DNA of 63,924 nt, filler included, from Guillardia theta CCMP2712 (lineage: Eukaryota; Protista; Cryptophyta), in the NCBI RefSeq assembly GCF_000315625.1. It is 3 parts of 3 records of this genome, joined end to end, with 100 filler letters (N's around TTAATTAATTAA, not from the genome) between each part and the next. Parts side by side here need not be neighbours in the genome. Positions count along the whole stretch, not along the records: positions 19,254 to 43,515 come from NW_005434556.1; 2 more parts are not named here. The stretch is one strand, 5' to 3'. Positions 19,952-43,615 of this stretch are shown here, piece after piece. A program made the translations under genes and the position numbers. The first letter of the stretch is position 1. The number at the start of each line of letters is the position of its first letter. Under the pieces are notes generated by a model. The model was not told where the DNA came from. It worked only from the letters and a program-made list of their open reading frames with translations, and searched no databases.

Positions 19952-20809
19952 CTTTCGAAGTCTTGCCAGCAGGACAGGACACGCAGGTGTCATGAGGGAT
20001 CATGGTATAGGCTGAGTAGTCGCAGTTGCAGTTCGTCTCTCGCGCTGAGAGGATGAAGATGGAGGAGGATACGTTGAGCCCTACCCCCGCACCCCAGGGA
20101 TCTTTGCCCTCCTGCTTGCTAGATTCACATGGAAGAAGAGGGAGAAGAGAAGGAGGAGGAGGTAGAGTAGTAGTAGTAGGAGGAGGAGGTAGAGGAGGAG
20201 GAGGAGGNNNNNNNNNNNNNNNNNNNNNNNNNNNNNNNNNNNNNNNNNNNNNNNNNNNNNNNNNNNNNNNNNNNNNNNNNNNNNNNNNNNNNNNNNNNNN
20301 NNNNNNNGAGGAGGAGGAGGAGGAGGAGGAGGAGGAGGAGGAGGAGGAGACGCAGGCGTACCAAGATCGAGCTGCATTTACCGAAACCAGCAGTGAAGAA
20401 GGAGGTCAGCGGCCTACAGAACCATCAACAATACAAAGAGAAGGAGGAGGAGAGGGTCGAGGTTGAGGTTGAGGTTGAGGAGGAGGAGGAGAAGGAGGAG
20501 GACAAGGAGAACGAAGGGCTGGGGAAGAGGAAGAAGAAGACGACAACGAAGGGAGGAAGAGGGCGAGGGCGACCAAGGGGGGGCGGGGGGATGAGGAGAA
20601 GAAGGAGAATAGGGAGAAGGAGAATAGGGAGGAGGAGGAGGAGGATTATCTTACTCATTCGAGGGTCTGCAGACGGTCTGATTGACATATGTCACGTTAG
20701 TGGCGTTAGCGACGGTTGTCAAATTCGTTGAGTTTGACGAGTTGGCGCTGCTGGGGCTGATTTGTCGGACGAGCGTCACATTACAGATGTCCCTGTCAGC
20801 TCAAGTCAA

Positions 20810-27018: not shown

Positions 27019-27197
27019 GATGCTGGCGTGAAGCTTGTGAAGCGCTTGTAGCATGAAAGACTGGAAGAAGTGTCGATAGGTGGTGAGACGAGCTTGTAGG
27101 ATGGTTGCAGTGCTGATGTGAGTGCGGAGAGAGCGTGTTCACGACGAAGAGATGTCGTTAATGCAAGATAGGATGATCTCGGACTAAGTGAGTAAGG
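27019..27197 (+). repeat. ~180-bp dispersed repeat, copy 1 (probable degenerate 3' exons of the duplicated coiled-coil gene)
   Basis: Closely similar to 32998-33177; the frame KLVKRL(W>TAG)HERLEE is interrupted in this copy. Confidence 0.85.
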
Positions 27198-27660: not shown

Positions 27661-28150
27661 TTAAGCTGAAGCAAATTGAGTTGAATCGACCTTCCTGATT
27701 GCATTAGAGCCAGAAGCCTGAAACCAGATAGCCTGATGCTGTAAATCCTCACTCGATCGGTCTGCCTCGATGGCTGCGAGCACGGCCTCGATGCCCCCGA
27801 GCCTCACAATCTTGACACTGTTGTCCGCGTTCAGGGCTAGGTTTCTTAGAGCTCCGCACGCCTCCTGCTGCACGGGCTGGCTGGTGGGATGTGCACGCAT
27901 GGCTGCGAGCACGGCATAGAGGTGTTGTCCGCGTTGCAAGCCAGGCTCCGTACTGCTCCGCACGCCTGCTCCTGTACGGGGTGGCTTGAGGAACAAGTCT
28001 GCATGGCTGCGAGCACGGCCTCGATGCCCCCGAGCCCCGCGATCTTGACCTCGTTGTCGTCGTTGACAGCAAGGCTCTGCAGCGCTCTACATGCCTGCTG
28101 CTGTACAGCCTGGCTGGCGGGATGTACACGCATGGCTGCGAGCACGGTCG
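27661..28150 (-). pseudogene. Armadillo (ARM)-repeat gene fragment, frameshifted
   Basis: About three to four 42-aa units (VLAAMRxHPxSxxVQQxACxALxxLAxNxDNxVKIxxLGGIEA). An internal deletion/frameshift lies near 27920 and there is no start. Confidence 0.8.
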
Positions 28151-28317
28151 TTTCATCTCTCCCCTCCCATCAGTTCACCATTCAATACAGTGACCCCGCG
28201 TTGAGCTGAAACTGGCCCGGTCAGAACGTGACTGTGACTCTGTGAGGCTCGGGGCCGCTTGTACTAGTAACTTCAGTCTCCCGGTGGCCCGGACTCCCGG
28301 CGTCCGCCGGAGTCACT

Positions 28318-30376
28318 GAGCAGTCAAGCCTCTGAGGCGGGTTTCCTGAGGCTGTCAGGTTCAACCGTCCGCGATGATGGGAGACGAAGCTACTTGAGGC
28401 AGGAGAGAGAGAGATGAACAGGAGAAGACAGGCAGCAGACAAGACGATGACCATAGGAGAGGAAAGAAAGCATGATAGAGCGCGCACCTGTCTAGATGAT
28501 CTTGTGAGAGCTGAGAGAGGCTGCTAGATGAACGAGTCGAGAGCCGCTCGATATCCGTCAGAGAGAAGAGTAGCGATGAGAGGAAACAACTCCCTCGACC
28601 GGTGAGCTCCTCGCCATCGTCTCATCTGCTGCTCACGTCTCCCAAGCAGCTCCCGCATGTCCTATGACTGTGTGACGGACAAGCGAAGAGCAAAGGCAAG
28701 CTGCCTCTCCAAGGTGACGCCTGCTCGCCCTCTCTTGGTGCTGCTGACGCACAAGCATCGCGAGCAGACGATCTCCGCGGTCCTCGCGACCGAGCAGGAG
28801 TCATGGTGGATGTCGAGGATACGCGAGATGTCGTGCAAGGATCTCAAGAGCATGGTCAGGATCTCAGCGCTAGAGCAACAGGTGACGAGGTCGACGGCTG
28901 TGGCGGAGACGATGCTGATGGGGGTGCTGCAGCTTGTGGGCGAGCAGACCAAGATGAAGATGCTGGAAGAGAAGCTGAGGTGCGACAGGAAGCTGCTTGC
29001 ACGAGCAATGCCGTGTGCTTGCTCTGTCTACAGGGCTGACATGCTGCTGCATGGCAAGAAGCGCTTGCCGGAGCTGACATGGCTGTACAGGTCTGCAGGC
29101 CTGCAGGCAGAGGAGAACAAGTCGTTTGACATGACTCAAGTGCTGAAGATGCAGGAGGAGTGAGTTGGTGGCGGCAGGGGTGATAAGCTTGTGATGGCGA
29201 GGAATGATCAGCCGTCACAAGCAAGAGATGAAGAGGCTGCGAGAAGAGTCGCAAGGCCGCGTCGCTTGTCTCAAGGCGAGTCTGCGCTCCTTGCGCGCTG
29301 TGCGGCGACTTAGCTGGAGGAGGGCGAGAGGGAGGAGATAGGCAGGAGATGAGGAGCAGGTGGAGAAGCAGGAGGAGGAGCAGTGGGTGGATGCTTGTAG
29401 AGCTGGTGACATGCTGGAGCAGAGCAAGCTGAGGGAGGTGAAGGCTTCAAACGAGTCGATGCAGCAGGAGATCGAGCGACTGAAAGGCCTCGAGCTCGAG
29501 GTCGAGCAGCAGACGTCAAGGTGCGATCGATTGCCGTTGCAGCCGTTAGTTCGAGGTTACGGCTGCAACAGAGGCGACGGGCTGGAAGAAGACAAGACAA
29601 GGCTGAATGGGAGGCTGGAGGAGATGGAGAGAGAGATGGAGAGCAGGAGGCAGATAGAAACGCAGCAAGGAGAGCAGATCGCAAGAGCTCTTCACGACCT
29701 CAACGTGACTTGACAAGTACACCGCACACCCCAGCTGACATGAGCGCGTCAGCTCTGCCGTCAGCAGGTCGAGGACCTGAGGAGCTCAAGCTTGTTGCAT
29801 GTGATACCTCATACTGCCTGTCTTGCTGGGCGAGATGCGCGTGTGAAGTTGCGTGTCTGCAAGGAACAAAAGCTGGAGGAAGCGGAAGAAGCGATGAAGG
29901 AGGTCGAACAGAAGCTACAAACATCAGAGAGCATGCGGGTGAGGTGGAGGAGAGGTGAAGGGTGCGGAGGATGAGACGAGGGTGTTGTTGGTGTGCAGGA
30001 GGTCAACGTAGAGGAGCTGGAGAAGGCGCGACAAGACAACCAGGTCTTACAGCAGAAGAATGAGATCTTGAGCAACGTCTTGGAGAGCTTGCAGGAGGAT
30101 ATGCGGGGGCTGCAGGTCTTGTGCGGGAGGAGAGGACATGTTGTTGTGGTAACGAGAGAGCGAAGGTGGAGTATGCGGAGATGAGGGAAGGGAAAGCTGC
30201 TTCAGACGGCAAGATTGTAGAGCTGGTAGAGTGTTGGGATGAAGAAAGGCTGTGGTGATGAGGGAGTGCTGTCAGATAAGACAGTTTGAACAAGAGAAAG
30301 ATGAGTATGCTGAGGCGATGGAAGAGAGACTGAAGGTGACGTGCAAGGAAGCATGAATGATGATTGTATGGATGGA

Positions 30377-30413
<37 letters not shown>

Positions 30414-30425
30414 GTGATGATGATA

Positions 30426-30472
<47 letters not shown>

Positions 30473-31225
30473 AATGTAGATGCAGATTCAGATGACGATG
30501 ATTACGATGATGATAATTCAAATGATGACGACGATGATGGAGATGATGTAGATGATGATGATGACGGAGATTATGATGATGGAGATGATGATGATTACAA
30601 TGCTGACGATGGGAGCAGCAATCTGAAGAGAGAATCTCCCAGACTTTGAAGGAACTACGTCAGGTACATGTCGTGTCGAGACTGATGTGCTCGTGGCCGC
30701 ACTAGCTGAACCACAGACAACAGAGCGAGAAGAAGATGTCTTCTTACACAAAGCACAACTCTCATCTTCGAGGTGAGGAGAGAGAGAGAGAGGTCAGGAG
30801 GATCGCGATGGATGACGACTACCATCACAGATGAGATCTCGTGTTTGACGCGTGCTCTCCATGTGCTGACGACATTGCAGCTCGGTGAGGAGGAGGGGAC
30901 AAGAAACCCTGGGGGAGGCAGGGAGGGAGAGGTAGAAGGAGGGCGAAGGTTTGAAACCTGTCTGCAGATGTGGACGAGCAGATTTCAAAGCTTGAGGGGA
31001 TGATTGTGAAACAGGCAAAGATATTCGACATGAGCGGGGGTGGAGCTTCAAGGCTTGACATTGTGAGCAGGAGGGATGGATAGAGAGCTTGAAGAACGTC
31101 TACGTGAGATCTAGTAGATGTCTTGGTGAGAGCTGATAGGTTGTCTTGCAGTCTTACCATCAGGCGAAATATCAGAACCTCGTCCGTGAATATCACTTGC
31201 TCTTCAACAGAGTCAGTCGTCTCCT
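28318..31225 (+). repeat. Segmental duplication, copy A (~2.9 kb)
   Basis: Near-identical, same orientation, to 40380-43393, including introns and the (GAT)n tract. Confidence 0.95.
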
Positions 31226-33170
31226 GCTCCTCCTCACTTCCACCAGTCCTTCTCCTTCTCGTCCATCCTTCTGCTTTCTCCTTCTTCTCCTCCTCCTCTT
31301 TCCTTTCNNNNNNNNNNNNNNNNNNNNNNNNNNNNNNNNNNNNNNNNNNNNNNNNNNNNNNNNNNNNNNNNNNNNNNNNNNNNNNNNNNNNNNNNNNNNN
31401 NNNNNNNNNNNNNNNNNNNNNNNNNNNNNNNNNNNNNNNNNNNNNNNNNNNNNNNNNNNNNNNNNNNNNNNNNNNNNNNNNNNNNNNNNNNNNNNNNNNN
31501 NNNNNNNNNNNNNNNNNNNNNNNNNNNNNNNNNNNNNNNNNNNNNNNNNNNNNNNNNNNNNNNNNNNNNNNNNNNNNNNNNNNNNNNNNNNNNNNNNNNN
31601 NNNNNNNNNNNNNNNNNNNNNNNNNNNNNNNNNNNNNNNNNNNNNNNNNNNNNNNNNNNNNNNNNNNNNNNNNNNNNNNNNNNNNNNNNNNNNNNNNNNN
31701 NNNNNNNNNNNNNNNNNNNNNNNNNNNNNNNNNNNNNNNNNNNNNNNNNNNNNNNNNNNNNNNNNNNNNNNNNNNNNNNNNNNNNNNNNNNNNNNNNNNN
31801 NNNNNNNNNNNNNNNNNNNNNNNNNNNNNNNNNNNNNNNNNNNNNNNNNNNNNNNNNNNNNNNNNNNNNNNNNNNNNNNNNNNNNNNNNNNNNNNNNNNN
31901 NNNNNNNNNNNNNNNNNNNNNNNNNNNNNNNNNNNNNNNNNNNNNNNNNNNNNNNNNNNNGAGGAGAGAGGGGAGGAGGGAGGGGAGGAGCAAGGAGGAG
32001 GAGGGAAGAGTAAAAGAACCAGAGCAGGAGGAGGAGAGGGTTTCTTTTTGACTTCATTTTATCTTCGCTCATGGTCGTTTGTCAGGAGTCTGCGCTACAA
32101 CGAGCTGCTAGTCGAATCTACACCCTCGAGATGGAGGTGAAGACGAAAAGATGCGAGAGGAACAGAGAAAGAAAAGGAAGAAGGAGGAGGAGGAGCAAAG
32201 ATATGAATACATGAATGATCAGGAAATGAAAGGAGCTGGAAGAGGGAGAAGAGAAGCCTAGAACTAGAGGATCAGCAGGACGAGGAGCAGGAGGATCAAG
32301 AGGAGGAGGAGGAGGAGAAGAGCAGCGGCAGCAGCAGTAGCGGCAGCAGTGGCAGCAGCGGCAGCAGCAGCAGAGGAGGAGGAGGAGAAGAAGCAGCAGC
32401 AGCAGAGGAGGAGAAAGAGCAGCTGCAGCAGCAGCAGCAGCAGCAGCAGAGGAGCAGCAGCAGGAGGCAGGGAGCAGGATTCCCTTCAGCTTGTCTGACC
32501 GCAATCTGACTTGTCATTCAGATTGCTGACCTGCGATCTCAACATTGCAGATGAAATCTTCAAGTCAACAATTTCTGATGCTATAGAGTGTAAATATCCT
32601 GAACAATGCTGCTGCTGCTGCATCATCATCACCATCACTATCTCCATCATCACCATCATCACCATCACTATCTCCATCATCATCTTCATCAACACCATCC
32701 CCATCACCATCATCATCATCATCATCCATCTTCACGTCGCTCCTTGTCGCTGCTTGTTGTCCTTGACACGTGAAGTGACATGACAAGGGTCAATCACATG
32801 CGATGAAGACGCGAGATAGTCGCGAGGATTCGCACTGACCTCCCCATCAGACTGGCAGATAAACACTCATCGTAGAAGACTCGCACAGAGTCCCTCGCCT
32901 CTCCTCTCCTCTCCTCTCCTCTCCTCTCCTCTCCTCTCCTCTCCTCTCCTCTCCTCTCCTCTTGCCCCCTCTCTCCTCTCCTCTCTTCTCCTTCTCTGAT
33001 GCTGGCGTGAAGCTGGTGAAGCGCTTGTGGCATGAAAGGCTGGCAGAAGTGTCGATAGGTCGTGAGATGAGCTTGTAGGATGATTGCAGTGCTGATGTGA
33101 GTGCAGAGAGAGCGTGTTGACGAGGTAGAGATGTCATATGATGCAAGATAGGATGATCTCAGACTGAGTG
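28576..33170 (+). CDS. Many-exon coiled-coil protein of unknown function (copy A; spans a gap)
   Basis: Short exons with GT-AG introns: DLKSMVRISALEQQ, TKMKMLEEKL, SKLREVKASNESMQQEIERLKGLE, EVNVEELEKARQDNQVLQQKNEIL, SYHQAKYQNLVREYHLLFN, ESALQRAASRIYTLEME. Limits approximate. Confidence 0.6.
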
Positions 33171-33177
33171 AGTAAGG
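32998..33177 (+). repeat. ~180-bp dispersed repeat, copy 2
   Basis: Matches 27019-27197; the frame KLVKRLWHERLAE is open; preceded by (CTCTC)n. Confidence 0.85.
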
Positions 33178-33504: not shown

Positions 33505-36500
33505 TTAAACGCAGCTCCTAGTGGCTTGCGAGCGGCTCGAAGGGGCTTGAGAAATGGCTCCTCGTTCCTCCAGCAGTCGCCTGACAGGGCTCGAGAGCGT
33601 CTCATCGATGACGGCACCGCGACACATCAGCTCTCTCTCCAACGGCCCGAAGTCAGCTGACAGAAGCCAACGGCCATCCCCAGCTAGAGTCCACGTCATC
33701 ACATGACCTTGAGACAGACAGAACACAGACAGCCTCCTCCCGTCCGGCCCCCACGCAAGCGCATCGACTCCTCCCTCGCCTCCCTCCAGCTCCTCCCGCC
33801 TCCCCGTCTCGACCTCCCACACCCACACCCTATCCCTCGACCTTGACCTTCCGCCCAGCCTCCTCCCGTCCGGCCCCCACGCAAGCGCATCGACTCCTTC
33901 CTCGCCTCCCTGCAGCTCCTCCCGCCTCCCCGTCTCGACCTCCCACACCAACACCCTATCTCCATTGATCGACCTGCCCGCCAGCCTCCTCCTGGTCGGT
34001 ACTGGCACTCCTTCTGCTGACCATTCCACGGGTACCTTCTGCTCCTTTACCCATTCGAGTCTCGTCCTTTCATCCTTCTCCATGTATCGTCCAGTCAAAG
34101 CTATCCTCCCGTCCGCCATGAAGCTTATCTTCCCTATATTCTCTTGCCCCTTATCAAGCTCGAGGCAGCACTTCCCTGTCTCTATATCCCACACCCTCAT
34201 CCTCCCATCCTCTGACCACGACACCAGTCTCTTCCCGTCTGCCCTCCAGCTTAGTATCTTGATCTTGCTCCCATGCGATCCCAGCTCCTTGTCACACTTT
34301 CCTGTCTCCACATCCCATACCTGTATCCTCCCGTCCCTCCTCCCTGTCGCTAGAGCCTTCCCTCCCGGCTCGAAGGCCCCGCAGCTCACATCCTCGCACT
34401 CGATCCTCGTGCTCGCTCGATCCCCGAAGTAAGCCCCGTCCAGCTGAGCTCCCTCCAGCCTCGCCTCCATGAAGTATCCGTGACTCGCGTCCACCCCCGA
34501 CAGGTCAGCCCGCCTCAGGTTGGTGCGGTGGAAGATGCCGTTCCTCAAGATCGCCCCGGGCACTCGCACTCCCTCCAGGTCAAGCCCCGACAGAGCCTCC
34601 CCCGCCGCCACCAGGATCGAAGCCGCGTTCGCTGACGCCCGTCCGGCCTCCTCGCTCCCATCATCTCGCGACGCTCTCACCACCTCCACCAGCTTCTCCC
34701 TGTACTTGTCGCGCTTGCTCCGCACCACCATGGCGTGCTCCTTGATCGACTCGACCTCCTCTTGCAGCCTCACTAGCGTCAGACTCGCCGGTGCCCTCAC
34801 GCGCCCGTCCTCCTGCTCACGCAGCTGCTCGAAGGTTGCCTCCGCCAGGAAGAAGCTCCGCAGCAGGTCGTGCACGAAGCTTACCTCCAGGCTCCCGTCC
34901 TGCTTGTTCTCCTTCACCTGAGTCAGACAGCCTCGCAGCAGCCAGTACCCCAGTTCGCACTTCAACGTCCCTCCTCGCGTGGTCAAGCTGAAGGGCTCGC
35001 TAGACAGGAAGGCGTCTCCTTCCTTCAGGACTACAAGGCTCCTACCTTCCCTGTACATGTGAAGACAGAGCTGTTTAGCTGCATATGAGTACTTCTCCAT
35101 GTAACTCTCGTCGTTGATGCCCGCTTCCTTCGCCCTGGCTTCAAGCTCCGGGCTCTGCTTGAGCTTGGACCACTCGCGCCGGTACCACTCCTTGGCGTAC
35201 TCCTTGTACACGCAGTGCCGGTTGATTGTCCGTCCAGGCTTGGCCCTGCGCTTCTTCTGCAGCCTCGGAAGCACGAGCAGAAGCACCTTGAGCGAGTAGG
35301 GCGTGCTCACGATGCCTTGAAGCTCCGGCATCGACTTCATCGCCTCCTCGTACTTCTCCTTGCTCCAGCCCCCGCCCCTTGTGCTTTTCGCGTGCTGTGC
35401 AATGTACCGGCTCACTCCCTTCTTGTCGCTCAGGCTCATTGGATACACCCAAGCCACCAGCACAGCGTCTCTTGCTTCAAGCCCGCGAGGACAGAATAGC
35501 GAGACTGACTTGCCTTCCTCCTCCAAGTAGCCGCTCCTACACGTGACCACGACCTTGACGTCCCGGCAGCTCACCAGCTCCTCCAGCACCTCCTGCACCA
35601 CGTTCCTCTCCCCTCCCATCTCGTCGTATGAGTCCAGCACCACCATAAACGAGTCGTTCCCGCGTACCCATGCTTGCCATGCCCGCTCGTTGTCGAACTT
35701 CTCTCCTCCTGTATCCTCCAAGTACGCTCTGACGCTCGTGTACTTGGGTAGATGTAGGAACACTGGATATCGCTCCCCCGGCCTCCAGGCCACTCCCGCC
35801 TCGATCGCCCACCTCATCCCCAGTGTCGACTTGCCGGCTCCGGCCTTACCCAGCAGCAGCAGCACCTGCTTGTCCTCCCGCTCCATGAAGCGACTCAGGA
35901 GCTCGTCCGAAGCTTCTCCAGCTGTCGCTCTGATCTCAGGATTGACATCCGAGCAGTTGGTCTCTATGAAGCACTCCATCGCATCCTTCACGCTCTCCTC
36001 CTCCCCCAGCATGCTCTCGATGTCCTTCCATAGACGCCGCGGCAGCAGGCTGCATGCCCCGTGTACCTTAGCGATCTTGCCGGTCGACAGGTCTACCTTG
36101 TCGGCAAAGCCGTAGAGATGGCTGTAGCACCAGGCGTTGATGATCATGTTGGCCTTAGGCGGCAGGTAGGGGGCGCTCTCAGAGGAGACCTGGTGGATGG
36201 AGACGTTCTCAAAGTCTTCCAGGTAGAAGTCAACCGTCTCGTCCCCTGCTGTCTTGAGCTCTCCGCCCTCCCCGCCATGCGTCCCCGTGTTGACGTGGAT
36301 GGACTGACCTAGTCGGGTCATCGCTACCAGCACCTCCTTCACGTCCTCCACGCTCACTTCCTCCTCGCTCTCCCACACGTGCTGACCCGACGGGAGGCTG
36401 AAGACAAAGAACTTGCTGTTCTTGGAGGACTGAAGGACGTAACAACCTGGAGCGGTCTCGACCAGTCCGAGCTCTCGCTTATCCTCATACAGCTTGTACA

Positions 36501-38547
36501 TGCGTCCAGGAAGCAGGTCGTCGGAGTGGGTGACTCTGCCTCGCGTCTGACCTTGTTTGTCTACTTGGCTTCTTCTTTGCTTCACTTCAACAATGGTCCT
36601 CTCTCCCGTCGAGCTCGCGTTTCCTCCCGAGACCTGCTTCGCCACTGCGATGCCTTCCCTGCTGGACCCTACTGCTACATCCTCCTCGGTGTTCATGCTC
36701 CCAGCAGTACTACGGGCCTCAGCCGGGCGCTGCTGGGTTCCTTCGACTTTCTGCTTCTTACACTCCGGCCTCCCCTCGGCCTCCTCCCTCTCACGTCTCA
36801 CTTCTCGATCGCTTCCAAGCAAGAAGTCACCAACGCTCCCCAAGCCGTTCAGATCTCTTCGCTCCATGTCTTCGAAGGCTTTTCTCAGCTCCTCCCTCCA
36901 GTCTTCCTCCGCCTCATTCCACATCATCCCCCGACCTTCATCGTGAACGACCCAGCCAGAGCTGCTGACCCACGTCCTCCAGCCCTCCAGCTCGTTGGTC
37001 GTGCAGTCTTGGGTCTCCCGGCGCTTGTTGTATTCCAGCAGCGAGTAGCACAAGAAGATGTCGCTCAGTCTCGTCATCCTCATCAGCATCACGAAGCTTC
37101 CTACCTCCACTGCCTTGTCCAGCACATAGCAGTAGAACAGCAGCTTCTGCCCGTTTTGAAGGTAGCTCTGCTTCCGGAGATGGCCCTCTATCAAGTCCAT
37201 CGCCTCCTCTGACGACATGGAAGCCTCGTAGCATTTATCTTGCACTCTTCGCTTCCACACGGCTAGAGCATCTCGCAGTTCGTCAGCATCTAAGACGCGG
37301 CAAAGCTCGGTCACGATCGTATAATCCAAGATCGCAATGCAGGTCTTCTCTTTCGGCACTTCCCGGCCAGACTCTTTCCTCCAAGCCTCGAACGAGGGAG
37401 CAAAGATCCTGTCCTCATTGAAGTAGCTCATCACCTCCTCGATAAACTCGCGTCCTACAAGCTCCTCTTCGACAATCGAGTAGAAATTTCCCAGCATCAC
37501 TCGCGAAGCAAACGATACATCTTTGTACCGCAAGAAACACATCAGGATCACTGAGCAGATCCGCCAGCGCGGCAGCTCCTGATTGCTGCTTGAGAGGAAA
37601 TACTTGCATGCTGCTCTCGCTCGATCTCTGAACGCCTCCGTATCTTCACCACAGTACGCGGCCACCAAAACCTCTGCCACTTTTGCCTCCGATCCTACTT
37701 CCGAGTCCACTGACTCTGCTGGCTCCCCATGAACGACTTGCTGTAGACCCTGCGTCACCTGCTTGAGGTCCGCTACAAGCTGACCGTCATCGGCGCCTGA
37801 CTGTTTGTTGTTGTTGACAAGCAGCTTCTTGAAAGCATTGACTCCAGCTGCCTCCCAGGTACGCACGTTGCTGGGGACGCGAGCCAGAAGATGACTTGCG
37901 CGACAGCACGGGCGGGACATGATCTTGAAGTTTGTAAGAAGCGGGTAGTTCATTCCCATCCAGTAGTAGAGGCTCTTGGACATGTCGATCGCCTCGTCGT
38001 CAGGAACTCTCGTCTCATGCCCGATCACAAAGTCCACATGCTTGATCAGCCCCTGCGCTACAATTCCCGACCAGCACAAGTTGAGCACTACCAGCCGCAG
38101 GTACTTGCGCTCCTTCACCAGCTCAGCCAGTGTATCGGTGAGCTCTTGAGGGGTATGATGCTTGCCGCCTATGCAGATCTTACCGTCTTGGTAGCCATGG
38201 CAAGCAAGGTGGAGGACGACTGGCTCTACTCTGCTCAGCTCCCGGGCAAGGTCGGTGATCTTCTTCTTGAAGCAATACTCGAAAACAACATTCTTGGCGA
38301 ACCCTATGAACGCAGCGTCTCCTTGCTCGTGAGCTCCTGCCATGAAGCGGTCTCTGATCAAGTCTCTCTCCTCCTCGACGTTGAGTCCGCATCGCTGCTC
38401 CGCGTCGGCGAAGAACAGCACCTTGAAGGGAGGATCGCCGCTGAATAGAGTATCTGTATCGAGTCGGCTTGGCGGGTCTTCAGCGTCGGAGGTCTTGCAA
38501 CACGCGCAGATACGGTGCAGCTCGACCCTGCTGTCATTCCTCGACAT
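33505..38547 (-). CDS. NLR-like STAND NTPase: CHAT (caspase-like) - helical region - second HG/C protease-like domain - NACHT - pentapeptide repeats - WD40
   Basis: Uninterrupted 1680-aa ORF. CHAT motifs VVLHLACHG and LVVLNLCWS; IHVNTGTHG...IINAWCYS. Walker A LLLLGKAGAGKST (~35824-35862), Walker B MVVLDSYDE, KVVVTCR, TPYSL, SFVHDLLRSFF. Pentapeptides LSGLDLEGVRVPGAILRNG...; about six WD40 repeats. Confidence 0.92.
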   Translation of the reverse strand: MSRNDSRVELHRICACCKTSDAEDPPSRLDTDTLFSGDPPFKVLFFADAEQRCGLNVEEERDLIRDRFMAGAHEQGDAAFIGFAKNVVFEYCFKKKITDLARELSRVEPVVLHLACHGYQDGKICIGGKHHTPQELTDTLAELVKERKYLRLVVLNLCWSGIVAQGLIKHVDFVIGHETRVPDDEAIDMSKSLYYWMGMNYPLLTNFKIMSRPCCRASHLLARVPSNVRTWEAAGVNAFKKLLVNNNKQSGADDGQLVADLKQVTQGLQQVVHGEPAESVDSEVGSEAKVAEVLVAAYCGEDTEAFRDRARAACKYFLSSSNQELPRWRICSVILMCFLRYKDVSFASRVMLGNFYSIVEEELVGREFIEEVMSYFNEDRIFAPSFEAWRKESGREVPKEKTCIAILDYTIVTELCRVLDADELRDALAVWKRRVQDKCYEASMSSEEAMDLIEGHLRKQSYLQNGQKLLFYCYVLDKAVEVGSFVMLMRMTRLSDIFLCYSLLEYNKRRETQDCTTNELEGWRTWVSSSGWVVHDEGRGMMWNEAEEDWREELRKAFEDMERRDLNGLGSVGDFLLGSDREVRREREEAEGRPECKKQKVEGTQQRPAEARSTAGSMNTEEDVAVGSSREGIAVAKQVSGGNASSTGERTIVEVKQRRSQVDKQGQTRGRVTHSDDLLPGRMYKLYEDKRELGLVETAPGCYVLQSSKNSKFFVFSLPSGQHVWESEEEVSVEDVKEVLVAMTRLGQSIHVNTGTHGGEGGELKTAGDETVDFYLEDFENVSIHQVSSESAPYLPPKANMIINAWCYSHLYGFADKVDLSTGKIAKVHGACSLLPRRLWKDIESMLGEEESVKDAMECFIETNCSDVNPEIRATAGEASDELLSRFMEREDKQVLLLLGKAGAGKSTLGMRWAIEAGVAWRPGERYPVFLHLPKYTSVRAYLEDTGGEKFDNERAWQAWVRGNDSFMVVLDSYDEMGGERNVVQEVLEELVSCRDVKVVVTCRSGYLEEEGKSVSLFCPRGLEARDAVLVAWVYPMSLSDKKGVSRYIAQHAKSTRGGGWSKEKYEEAMKSMPELQGIVSTPYSLKVLLLVLPRLQKKRRAKPGRTINRHCVYKEYAKEWYRREWSKLKQSPELEARAKEAGINDESYMEKYSYAAKQLCLHMYREGRSLVVLKEGDAFLSSEPFSLTTRGGTLKCELGYWLLRGCLTQVKENKQDGSLEVSFVHDLLRSFFLAEATFEQLREQEDGRVRAPASLTLVRLQEEVESIKEHAMVVRSKRDKYREKLVEVVRASRDDGSEEAGRASANAASILVAAGEALSGLDLEGVRVPGAILRNGIFHRTNLRRADLSGVDASHGYFMEARLEGAQLDGAYFGDRASTRIECEDVSCGAFEPGGKALATGRRDGRIQVWDVETGKCDKELGSHGSKIKILSWRADGKRLVSWSEDGRMRVWDIETGKCCLELDKGQENIGKISFMADGRIALTGRYMEKDERTRLEWVKEQKVPVEWSAEGVPVPTRRRLAGRSINGDRVLVWEVETGRREELQGGEEGVDALAWGPDGRRLGGRSRSRDRVWVWEVETGRREELEGGEGGVDALAWGPDGRRLSVFCLSQGHVMTWTLAGDGRWLLSADFGPLERELMCRGAVIDETLSSPVRRLLEERGAISQAPSSRSQATRSCV

Positions 38548-38599
38548 ACTAGAGAAGCGAAAGATTAAGGGGAAAGAGTAGGAGGGAGAAGATTAACAT

Positions 38600-38732
38600 A
38601 AGAAGACAACACTAGAGGCAGACAGCGCCAGACAACACTAGAGGCAGAGAGCAAGACAACACTAGAGGCACAGAGCAAGACAAGACTAGAGGCAGAGAGC
38701 AAGACAAGACTAGAGGCAGAGAGCAACACAAG
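38600..38732. repeat. 24-bp minisatellite (AAGACAACACTAGAGGCAGAGAGC) x~5 just upstream of the NLR ORF
   Basis: Visible tandem copies with no spacers. Confidence 0.85.
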
Positions 38733-39098
38733 GCAGGAAGCGGGAGACGAGGAGAGATTCGAAGGGGTAGTTAGCAATACATTGAGGGGGTAGGGGTCAT
38801 TCCGGAGAATGGCATGGTGCGGGCCCGTGGCCCGGCCGATGGCCGCGTCACTGAGAAGTGACTCGGGCAGCTAAGTGACTCCACGCTGCCGCAGTGCCGT
38901 ACGATGAGCTGAGCCGCAGGAGGCTGGTTGTGTGGAAGCCGCNNNNNNNNNNNNNNNNNNNNNNNNNNNNNNNNNNNNNNNNNNNNNNNNNNNNNNNNNN
39001 NNNNNNNNNNNNNNNNNNNNNNNNNNNNNNNNNNNNNNNNNNNNNNNNNNNNNNNNNNNNNNNNNNNNNNNNNNNNNNNNNNNNNNNNNNNNNNNNNN

Positions 39099-40379: not shown

Positions 40380-43393
<3,014 letters not shown>

Positions 43394-43615
43394 CCATCCT
43401 CCTCCTTCTCCATCCTCCTGCATCCTCCTCCTTCTCCTCCTCCTTCTCCTCCTCCTTTCACCTCCTTCTCTCCTCCACTACTGCATACGACCTTTAAGTT
43501 TTCTATCGAGGGGAGNNNNNNNNNNNNNNNNNNNNNNNNNNNNNNNNNNNNNNNNNNNNTTAATTAATTAANNNNNNNNNNNNNNNNNNNNNNNNNNNNN
43601 NNNNNNNNNNNNNNN

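Follow-up and report, generated by a model that had tools for sequence, protein, structure and literature searches.

Can a cryptophyte alga encode an immune-type receptor with a caspase-like protease built into the same polypeptide, and how would such a protein have arisen? The question is raised by a locus in the nuclear genome of Guillardia theta CCMP2712 (minus strand, positions 33505-38547), which lies in a stretch of 63,924 nucleotides (nt), hereafter the window, within the 24-kb piece taken from record NW_005434556.1. The original prediction was of an intronless nucleotide-binding oligomerization domain (NOD)-like receptor (NLR) bearing a CHAT-type protease, possibly retroposed or acquired horizontally. 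The gene is instead a chimera, in which a duplicated CHAT-mod2 gene with its 5' flank has been joined in frame to an older resident mod3-NACHT-pentapeptide-WD40 gene (mod2 and mod3 being two domains described below). We consider it probable that this young fusion onto a resident cryptophyte NLR yields a six-part protein of the STAND (signal transduction ATPases with numerous domains) class, whose protease is switched on by oligomerization of its NACHT domain.

Gene structure and domain architecture

Read on the minus strand, the frame is uninterrupted from ATG to stop over 1680 codons, the runner-up open reading frame (ORF) in the 24-kb piece being 479 amino acids (aa) long. An intron-free ORF of 5 kb is atypical of this host, since G. 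theta genes have a mean of 5.3 introns and 79% of them contain introns (PMC6260743). Contigs from sequencing runs are collinear along the gene and contain no spliced joints, and the single 5-kb ORF and its lack of introns, both predicted originally, are thus borne out. The gene is laid out as follows:

33505-38547, minus strand: chimeric CHAT-mod2 :: mod3-NACHT-pentapeptide-WD40 gene, complete ORF of 1680 codons plus stop
37843-38442, minus strand (aa ~36-235): CHAT-type clan-CD cysteine protease domain, from profile, predicted fold and motifs
36718-37695, minus strand (aa ~285-610): mod2, a probably helical, unannotated domain, from homology to paralogs
36525-36640, minus strand (codons ~637-674): fusion junction, between the end of donor homology and the start of NLR homology
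35893-36519, minus strand (aa ~677-885): mod3, a Tox-HDC-like domain, from alignment A2 and profile searches
35506-35865, minus strand (aa 895-1014): NACHT NTPase core, from Pfam and Walker motifs
35824-35850, minus strand (aa 900-908): Walker A motif GKAGAGKST, from motif location
35620-35643, minus strand (aa 969-976): Walker B motif VVLDSYDE, from motif location
34588-35505, minus strand (aa ~1015-1320): NOD-associated region from the NACHT core to the pentapeptide repeats, collinear with bacterial relatives
34414-34587, minus strand (aa ~1321-1378): pentapeptide repeats (PF00805), aligned to a bacterial relative
33628-34401, minus strand (aa ~1383-1640): WD40 repeats, from Pfam
33508-33627, minus strand: conserved C-terminal tail bearing RRLLEERGA, common to paralogs and the bacterial relative P0005

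The tripartite layout of NLRs (N-terminal effector, central NOD and C-terminal repeats) is present in one polypeptide. NACHT (PF05729) scores 28.7-31.6 bits against a cut-off of 26.7, and the Walker A and B motifs, previously described as intact, were both found and can now be given positions. Pentapeptide repeats (30.1 bits against 20.2, aa 1339-1374) and WD40 repeats (48.8 bits against 27, aa ~1383-1612) likewise exceed their curated Pfam cut-offs, as foreseen, and the terminal LLEERGA is located at 33556-33576. With the fold and dyad of the CHAT domain also present (see below), the proposed sensor-switch-protease architecture stands. The region spanning aa 260-880, for which nothing had been proposed, holds two further domains and the gene-fusion junction.

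The WD40 region contains two tandem units of 126 nt (33730-33981) that are 89-91% identical, and at least six such units stand in tandem in the paralog L005 (L005:3511-4291). The near-identical units here and the longer arrays of L005 may reflect shuffling of sensor-domain repeats. Repeat shuffling of a comparable kind is known in fungal NLR sensors.

A recent in-frame fusion

Paralogs were sought in a G. theta assembly of 87.1 Mb in 669 contigs and read within loci of ~3.3-4.3 kb, many of them ending at the locus edge. Among the NLR paralogs compared, a 640-aa N-terminal extension is present in this gene only: all of the others (11/11) start at an ATG of their own, 0-150 aa ahead of mod3, and a relative from the cryptophyte Hanusia phi (P0004) starts with MKR, its residue 33 aligning to residue 667 of the chimera. 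The extension matches, at 87% protein and 92.4% DNA identity, a separate gene of 642 aa with its own stop codon (L014), which lies 22 kb off on the same contig. DNA homology between the two (92%) runs from 38732 to 36641; it starts 185 nt or more ahead of the ATG and ends at codon 636, six codons short of the L014 stop. From codon ~675 (position 36524) onwards, the DNA is homologous to that of the NLR paralogs. The junction is placed at 36525-36640 because the former homology ends at 36641 and the latter starts at 36524. Upstream of the gene, the following feature is shared with the donor paralog:

38548-38871, minus strand: 5' flank common with L014, with 92% identity to 38732, then matches of 76-87% to 38871 (~325 nt)

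Since this flank was co-duplicated, the N-terminal half arrived through duplication at the DNA level. The two halves differ in divergence from their nearest paralogs: synonymous divergence (dS) is 0.11 for the N-terminal half, with a ratio of nonsynonymous to synonymous rates (omega) of 0.50 (0.34 in mod2), and 0.6-1.5 for the NLR half, with omega of 0.25-0.47. By this measure, the NLR half is much older than the N-terminal half.

A short tandem repeat occupies 38603-38732, just upstream of the ATG; it is common with L014, in which the array (L014:2336-3150) is several-fold longer.

The junction in independent sequencing runs

The stretch is present, wholly or partly, in runs of nine studies of G. 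theta, and contigs from three separate studies cover the junction:

36361-38047, X1 contig: junction bridged, with 0 differences across it
36361-36827, X3 contig: junction bridged, with 0 differences
36361-37491, X5 contig: junction bridged, with 0 differences across it

Because contigs of three studies cross it without a difference, the chimera is not an assembly artefact or misjoin. That the segment might be contaminant or misjoined had been named as grounds for abandoning the original prediction; its presence in runs of nine studies speaks against the former, and the bridged junction against the latter.

Within the CHAT region, at 38203-38353, the contigs of X1 and X5, which are likely RNA, share at least 10 of the same differences from the window, and X3, which is likely DNA, matches the window. 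Two of these differences fall in the His motif at third codon positions, the one in Ala115 being certainly synonymous. The shared differences suggest that an allele is expressed, or that a further, almost identical copy exists.

The CHAT protease domain

The identity of the N-terminal domain as a CHAT protease is firmly established by the agreement of a family profile with the predicted fold. Both catalytic motifs lie exactly where the original prediction had put them, preceded by a third motif:

38194-38214, minus strand: His motif LHLACHG (H117), with HLACHG itself at 38194-38211
38065-38091, minus strand: Cys motif VVLNLCWSG (C158), with LNLC itself at 38074-38085
38497-38511, minus strand (aa 13-17): I-C-x-C-C motif, from alignment A1, in most CHAT-like paralogs

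Alignment A1, of 18 paralogous CHAT-like domains from the G. theta genome, has the consensus P-V/I-I/L-L-H-L/F-A-C-H-G for the His motif and L-V-V-L-N-L/A-C-x-S for the Cys motif, and 14 of its 18 members match Pfam CHAT (best E 1.2e-6). Searched against the PDB, the A1 profile matched SAVED-CHAT (8tl0_A) along 160 residues (E 3.7e-17, 65.6 bits), the His and Cys motifs both lining up. An AlphaFold2 model of the domain (predicted local distance difference test (pLDDT) 82, predicted template modelling score (pTM) 0.82) also retrieved SAVED-CHAT first in Foldseek (E 3.9e-10, TMq 0.61), with Csx29/TPR-CHAT, legumain, GPI transamidase (PIGK), CED-3, caspases and separase at lower ranks. The match to a caspase fold at aa ~40-205, on which the original prediction had hung, was thus found by profile and by fold. 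H117 and C158 pair with two residues of 8tl0, the His within IGHG and the Cys within LNAC, which correspond to H375 and C422 in the numbering of the paper (the chain index being offset by 20 residues, equally for His and Cys), and the H375A/C422A double mutant of SAVED-CHAT is inactive (bioRxiv 10.1101/2023.06.23.546230). The I-C-x-C-C motif, which lies ahead of the protease fold, could be a putative acylation or metal-binding site.

The accessory domains mod2 and mod3

No match to mod2 was obtained in Pfam, in the PDB (with a 7-sequence profile) or in the ESM Atlas. Its relatives carry a CHAT-like or Peptidase_C14 (metacaspase) domain at the N-terminus, and mod2 is therefore read, from this homology, as a partner domain of caspase-fold proteases. 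So far it occurs in cryptophyte proteins only, plus one ENA protein. Some 10 tandem ORFs of roughly 624 aa with mod2 are found at G000:C97:155230-231682, some with in-frame TGA codons; judged by the analogous GUITHDRAFT_101222, they probably encode a metacaspase (Peptidase_C14) joined to mod2.

On sequence comparison, mod3 is the native N-terminal module of the cryptophyte NLR family, being located immediately ahead of NACHT in 11/11 NLR paralogs read; the usual layout of the family is mod3-NACHT-pentapeptide-WD40. In alignment A2 its invariant motifs are IHVNTGTHG, F-x-E-D, S-I/L-H and NMIINAWC-x-S, with His and Cys both invariant, and the chimera retains all of the invariant residues (33/33). 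Two of the motifs can be placed in the window:

36274-36300, minus strand: mod3 motif IHVNTGTHG, invariant in A2
36121-36141, minus strand: mod3 motif INAWCYS, invariant in A2

The likeness of mod3 to Tox-HDC (PF15656) comes from its relatives: 4 of the 11 mod3 paralogs match this family (best E 1.5e-4), precomputed matches exist for the paralog GUITHDRAFT_141136 and for P0004 of Hanusia, and a distant relative of 270 aa (P0020) scores 20.9 bits (E 4.5e-4), barely below the 21-bit cut-off. An exhaustive profile search recovered 167 mod3 relatives among 1.84 billion representative proteins. In 6 of the 10 distant relatives scanned, mod3 stands ahead of a STAND NTPase, the combinations being NACHT+ankyrin, NACHT+HEAT, NB-ARC+TPR, AAA+LRR, NACHT alone and NB-ARC/AAA alone; on account of these six, mod3 appears to behave as a genuine NLR effector module.

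The predicted fold of mod3 (pLDDT 71, core >90) retrieved nothing under E 0.2 from the PDB by Foldseek, only generic alpha/beta domains by VIA-align wide (best Z 5.7), and in the ESM Atlas only matches with TM <0.4 by shape and scores <0.85 by features. Weak rows for protein-tyrosine-phosphatases recurred; this candidate was rejected, as A2 contains no conserved Arg six residues past the Cys.

Proposed mechanism and competing explanations

Building upon the domain identities, intact motifs, chimeric origin, bridged junction and array context, the mechanism that we infer would run as follows. Until a ligand is bound, the sensor end made up of the WD40 and pentapeptide repeats would hold the protein in an inactive state; nucleotide exchange would then drive oligomerization of NACHT, thereby bringing the N-terminal modules together; and the CHAT protease would be activated by induced proximity, in the manner of the SAVED-CHAT filament or apoptosome caspases, to cleave its substrates, with defence or death of the cell as the result. 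A second effector role is possible for the native mod3. There is precedent both for CHAT proteases being switched on through oligomerization, in SAVED-CHAT filaments (bioRxiv 10.1101/2023.06.23.546230), and for CHAT or S8 proteases within fungal NLR-like sensors that activate gasdermins (PMC8851545, PMC12881547). From the architecture and these fungal and bacterial precedents, we infer a possible role in immunity or cell death. That the chimera is a functional dual-effector NLR, i.e. a member of a Tox-HDC-like family that very recently captured a CHAT protease from the adjacent array, is a more tentative proposal, to which we give somewhat less than an even chance.

Several observations weigh against a functional, protease-activating NLR. 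Two enzymatic modules in series before one NACHT are unusual; the older mod3 could be sterically compromised, or the added CHAT could be functionless baggage. Omega of ~0.5 in the CHAT half amounts to moderate constraint, measured on few substitutions. No gasdermin (PF04598) was found in the genome as a candidate substrate, in a search that was uninformative because its control was equally silent. Taken alone, aa 1-260 score 15.9 bits with Pfam CHAT (PF12770; E 0.0089), under the 24-bit cut-off, though the call holds because the 18-paralog profile and the predicted fold match 8tl0; Tox-HDC on the chimera's own mod3 gives 11.3 bits against a cut-off of 21 (E 0.4). The exact 1680-aa product was not found in public protein collections, leaving the gene model without annotation support. 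Evidence of expression is thin, since the status of X1 and X5 (44 and 39 Mb in total) as transcriptome assemblies is probable but a guess, and the sole certain RNA run, X20, yielded four reads in the 6% of its data that were scanned. The orientation of these reads fits a minus-strand transcript, provided that the library is of the usual stranded kind, and expression of the gene is detectable, if weakly documented.

The most durable alternative is that the chimera is real and yet a functionless recent accident, a young product of a rearranging array that has not yet decayed. The array is unstable, the neighbouring unit being reduced to a truncated remnant of Armadillo repeats; several CHAT-like paralogs have lost the catalytic Cys or His, with both gone from L025/L026 (A1); the RNA-seq signal is very low; and the N-terminal omega of 0.5 is compatible with relaxed constraint on one of two copies. 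Against this, all 1680 codons are open, every catalytic, Walker and invariant mod3 residue is kept, likely transcriptome contigs span the junction, and the N-terminal half differs from its nearest paralog by 42.8 synonymous and 80.2 nonsynonymous changes, clearly off the ~27 and ~96 of neutral evolution (chi-square ~12). We therefore regard a functionless accident as unlikely.

Far less probable still is that the locus makes two products, a CHAT-mod2 protein and an internally started mod3-NACHT-WD40 protein, such that the protease would not be built in. Each half does exist as an independent gene elsewhere in the genome, and contigs are not proof of a single transcript. The halves are nevertheless not separated by a stop codon, the NLR half has lost the start Met and MKR-type leader that its paralogs all possess, with no Met from the junction until ~aa 689, inside mod3, and likely RNA contigs cross the junction with 0 differences.

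Acquisition of the whole gene as a unit, by horizontal transfer, retroposition or contamination, is the least credible explanation. In its favour are the lack of introns in a host averaging 5.3 per gene, and the bacterial affinity of the NLR core, whose closest relatives outside cryptophytes are collinear with it to the C-terminal tail. Identity to these is just 25-28%, however, and the genome contains, on many different contigs, at least 12 NLR paralogs and over 20 CHAT-like ones. The two halves also differ in age and nearest paralog, and duplication of the upstream flank together with the N-terminal half indicates an event at the level of DNA, not one mediated by RNA. A retrogene would have homology confined to the transcribed region, whereas donor homology here reaches 185 nt or more beyond the ATG into the 5' flank, and the gene sits within a tandem array formed at the DNA level; the suggestion of retroposition accordingly fails. 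The suggestion of horizontal acquisition fares no better, given these native paralogs and relatives in Hanusia phi at 45-60% identity, closer than those of bacteria. For the same reasons, and because the GC content of the gene is similar to that of its surroundings and it is present in runs of nine studies, recent transfer or contamination is unsupported. Local DNA duplication followed by fusion, rather than retroposition or recent horizontal transfer, explains the origin of the gene.

Bacterial relatives and known systems

Outside the cryptophytes, the NLR core finds its nearest relatives among bacterial proteins of NACHT-Pentapeptide-WD40 layout. One of these (P0005) is encoded on a clearly bacterial metagenome contig (L033), near a second such gene, and is collinear with the chimera from Walker A through the helical region, pentapeptides and WD40 repeats to the LLxxRGA tail. 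It differs in its identity of 25-28%, in that the match begins at Walker A, and in that CHAT or mod3 families are not listed for it. Named bacterial relatives belong to Mycoavidus (with many copies in metagenome-assembled genomes), Coxiellaceae, Rickettsiales and Myxococcales, which are intracellular or symbiotic lineages; the association of this architecture with endosymbiotic bacteria, drawn in the original prediction, agrees with the first three of these being among the nearest. An ancient exchange with bacteria, in either direction, is possible for the NLR family as a whole. On L033, the two NACHT-Pentapeptide-WD40 genes (L033:8001-17716) have a 205-aa ORF between them.

Enzymatic effectors at the N-terminus of NLR/STAND receptors are well documented from animals, plants and fungi, and more recently from bacteria. 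For cryptophytes, nothing of this kind was found in the searchable literature. Among known systems, a close parallel is found in the fungal HET-Q2-like NLRs and protease sensors, which combine CHAT or S8 with NACHT/NB-ARC and WD40/TPR/ANK (PMC8851545, PMC12881547); they share the N-terminal protease, the central NOD and C-terminal superstructure-forming repeats with highly similar tandem WD40 units. The G. theta protein differs from them in its cryptophyte host, in the pentapeptides between NOD and WD40, in the presence of mod2 and mod3 between protease and NACHT, in the addition of its protease by recent fusion, and in that no gasdermin was detected, adjacent or otherwise, by the uninformative search described above.

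The closest solved homologue by both profile and fold is SAVED-CHAT of the type III-B CRISPR/CBASS hybrid of Haliangium ochraceum (8tl0), with which the dyad aligns. Oligomerization-driven activation is a plausible shared principle. SAVED-CHAT differs in being bacterial, in its sensor (a SAVED domain that binds cA3), in its low identity (~18-20%) and in having PCaspase as a substrate, for which no counterpart is identified in G. theta. The invariant His and Cys of mod3 are in turn reminiscent of Tox-HDC, a putative toxin domain whose signature residues are H, D/N and C, though mod3 sits as the N-terminal module of an NLR and not at the tip of a polymorphic toxin. The apoptosome and inflammasome (Apaf-1/CED-4 or NLRC4 with caspases) follow the same logic of a STAND ATPase with repeats and induced proximity; there, a separate C14-type protease is recruited via CARD, whereas in G. 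theta a CHAT-type protease is covalently built in.

Protease-bearing NLRs are thus already known, and what is new here is the recent local stacking of one onto a cryptophyte NLR with an effector-like domain of its own. As a recent and datable in-frame addition, the fusion provides concrete evidence for the mix-and-match evolution of NLR effectors, which is usually only inferred, and the chimera and its two parental-type genes offer a simple experimental comparison. G. theta also emerges with a sizeable set of intronless NACHT genes (18 loci or more) and with an expanded complement of caspase-fold proteases paired with varied partner domains, and the standard N-terminus of one NLR family is a rare Tox-HDC-like module without a solved fold match. 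If the protease is activated by NACHT oligomerization, the logic of a caspase on a STAND platform would reach another eukaryotic supergroup. Were both effectors functional, the gene would be a dated snapshot (dS ~0.1) of effector swapping or stacking in an undescribed protist immune-receptor repertoire, and NACHT sensors would act through built-in proteases of the caspase fold in protist algae, as in fungi and bacteria.

Tandem array and genome repertoire

The locus is a tandem array, the unit of which is a B segment plus a CHAT-protease gene. This reading rests on two observations: further copies of the B segment are found immediately 5' of other CHAT-family genes on contig C118 (with 97-99% identity in L021), and five further CHAT-like genes occur on the same strand within 52 kb. 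The gene itself is flanked by direct repeats (A/A' and B/B'), which together with a neighbouring remnant are located as follows:

40380-43456, strand not assigned: repeat B', 95-96.5% identical to B at 28318-31294, direct repeat
32998-33177, strand not assigned: repeat A', downstream of the gene, 91% identical to A at 27019-27197, direct repeat
27731-28156, minus strand: truncated Armadillo-type repeat remnant in the neighbouring unit, related to the CHAT-Armadillo C-termini of L018, L019, L021 and L022

An interpretation of the flanking repeats as empty and filled sites was dropped, because the supposedly empty unit keeps an Armadillo-repeat remnant of another CHAT-family gene and is a decayed unit. 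Neighbouring ORFs gave no Pfam matches. Runs of N mark assembly gaps at 31308-31960, 38943-39098 and 20208-20307, and since one of them lies ~400 nt 5' of the start codon, neither the promoter region nor the array-unit boundaries are complete.

Across the genome, the at least 18 NACHT loci are accompanied by at least 10 canonical CHAT matches, and at no other locus do CHAT and NACHT matches occur together; by these searches, which give lower bounds, the chimera is the only CHAT+NACHT gene in the genome. The CHAT-like family otherwise combines with Armadillo repeats, mod2 or ResIII-helicase-like regions, and its relative in Hanusia carries Armadillo repeats. At L029 and L030 (G000:C207:72062-72448 and C59:373111-373485), a divergent CHAT-like domain is followed by a ResIII/helicase-like region. 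L025 and L026 (G000:C177:37707-39402) are nearly identical CHAT-like + Armadillo genes arranged head to head, and are probably pseudo-proteases, since their catalytic His and Cys are both replaced.

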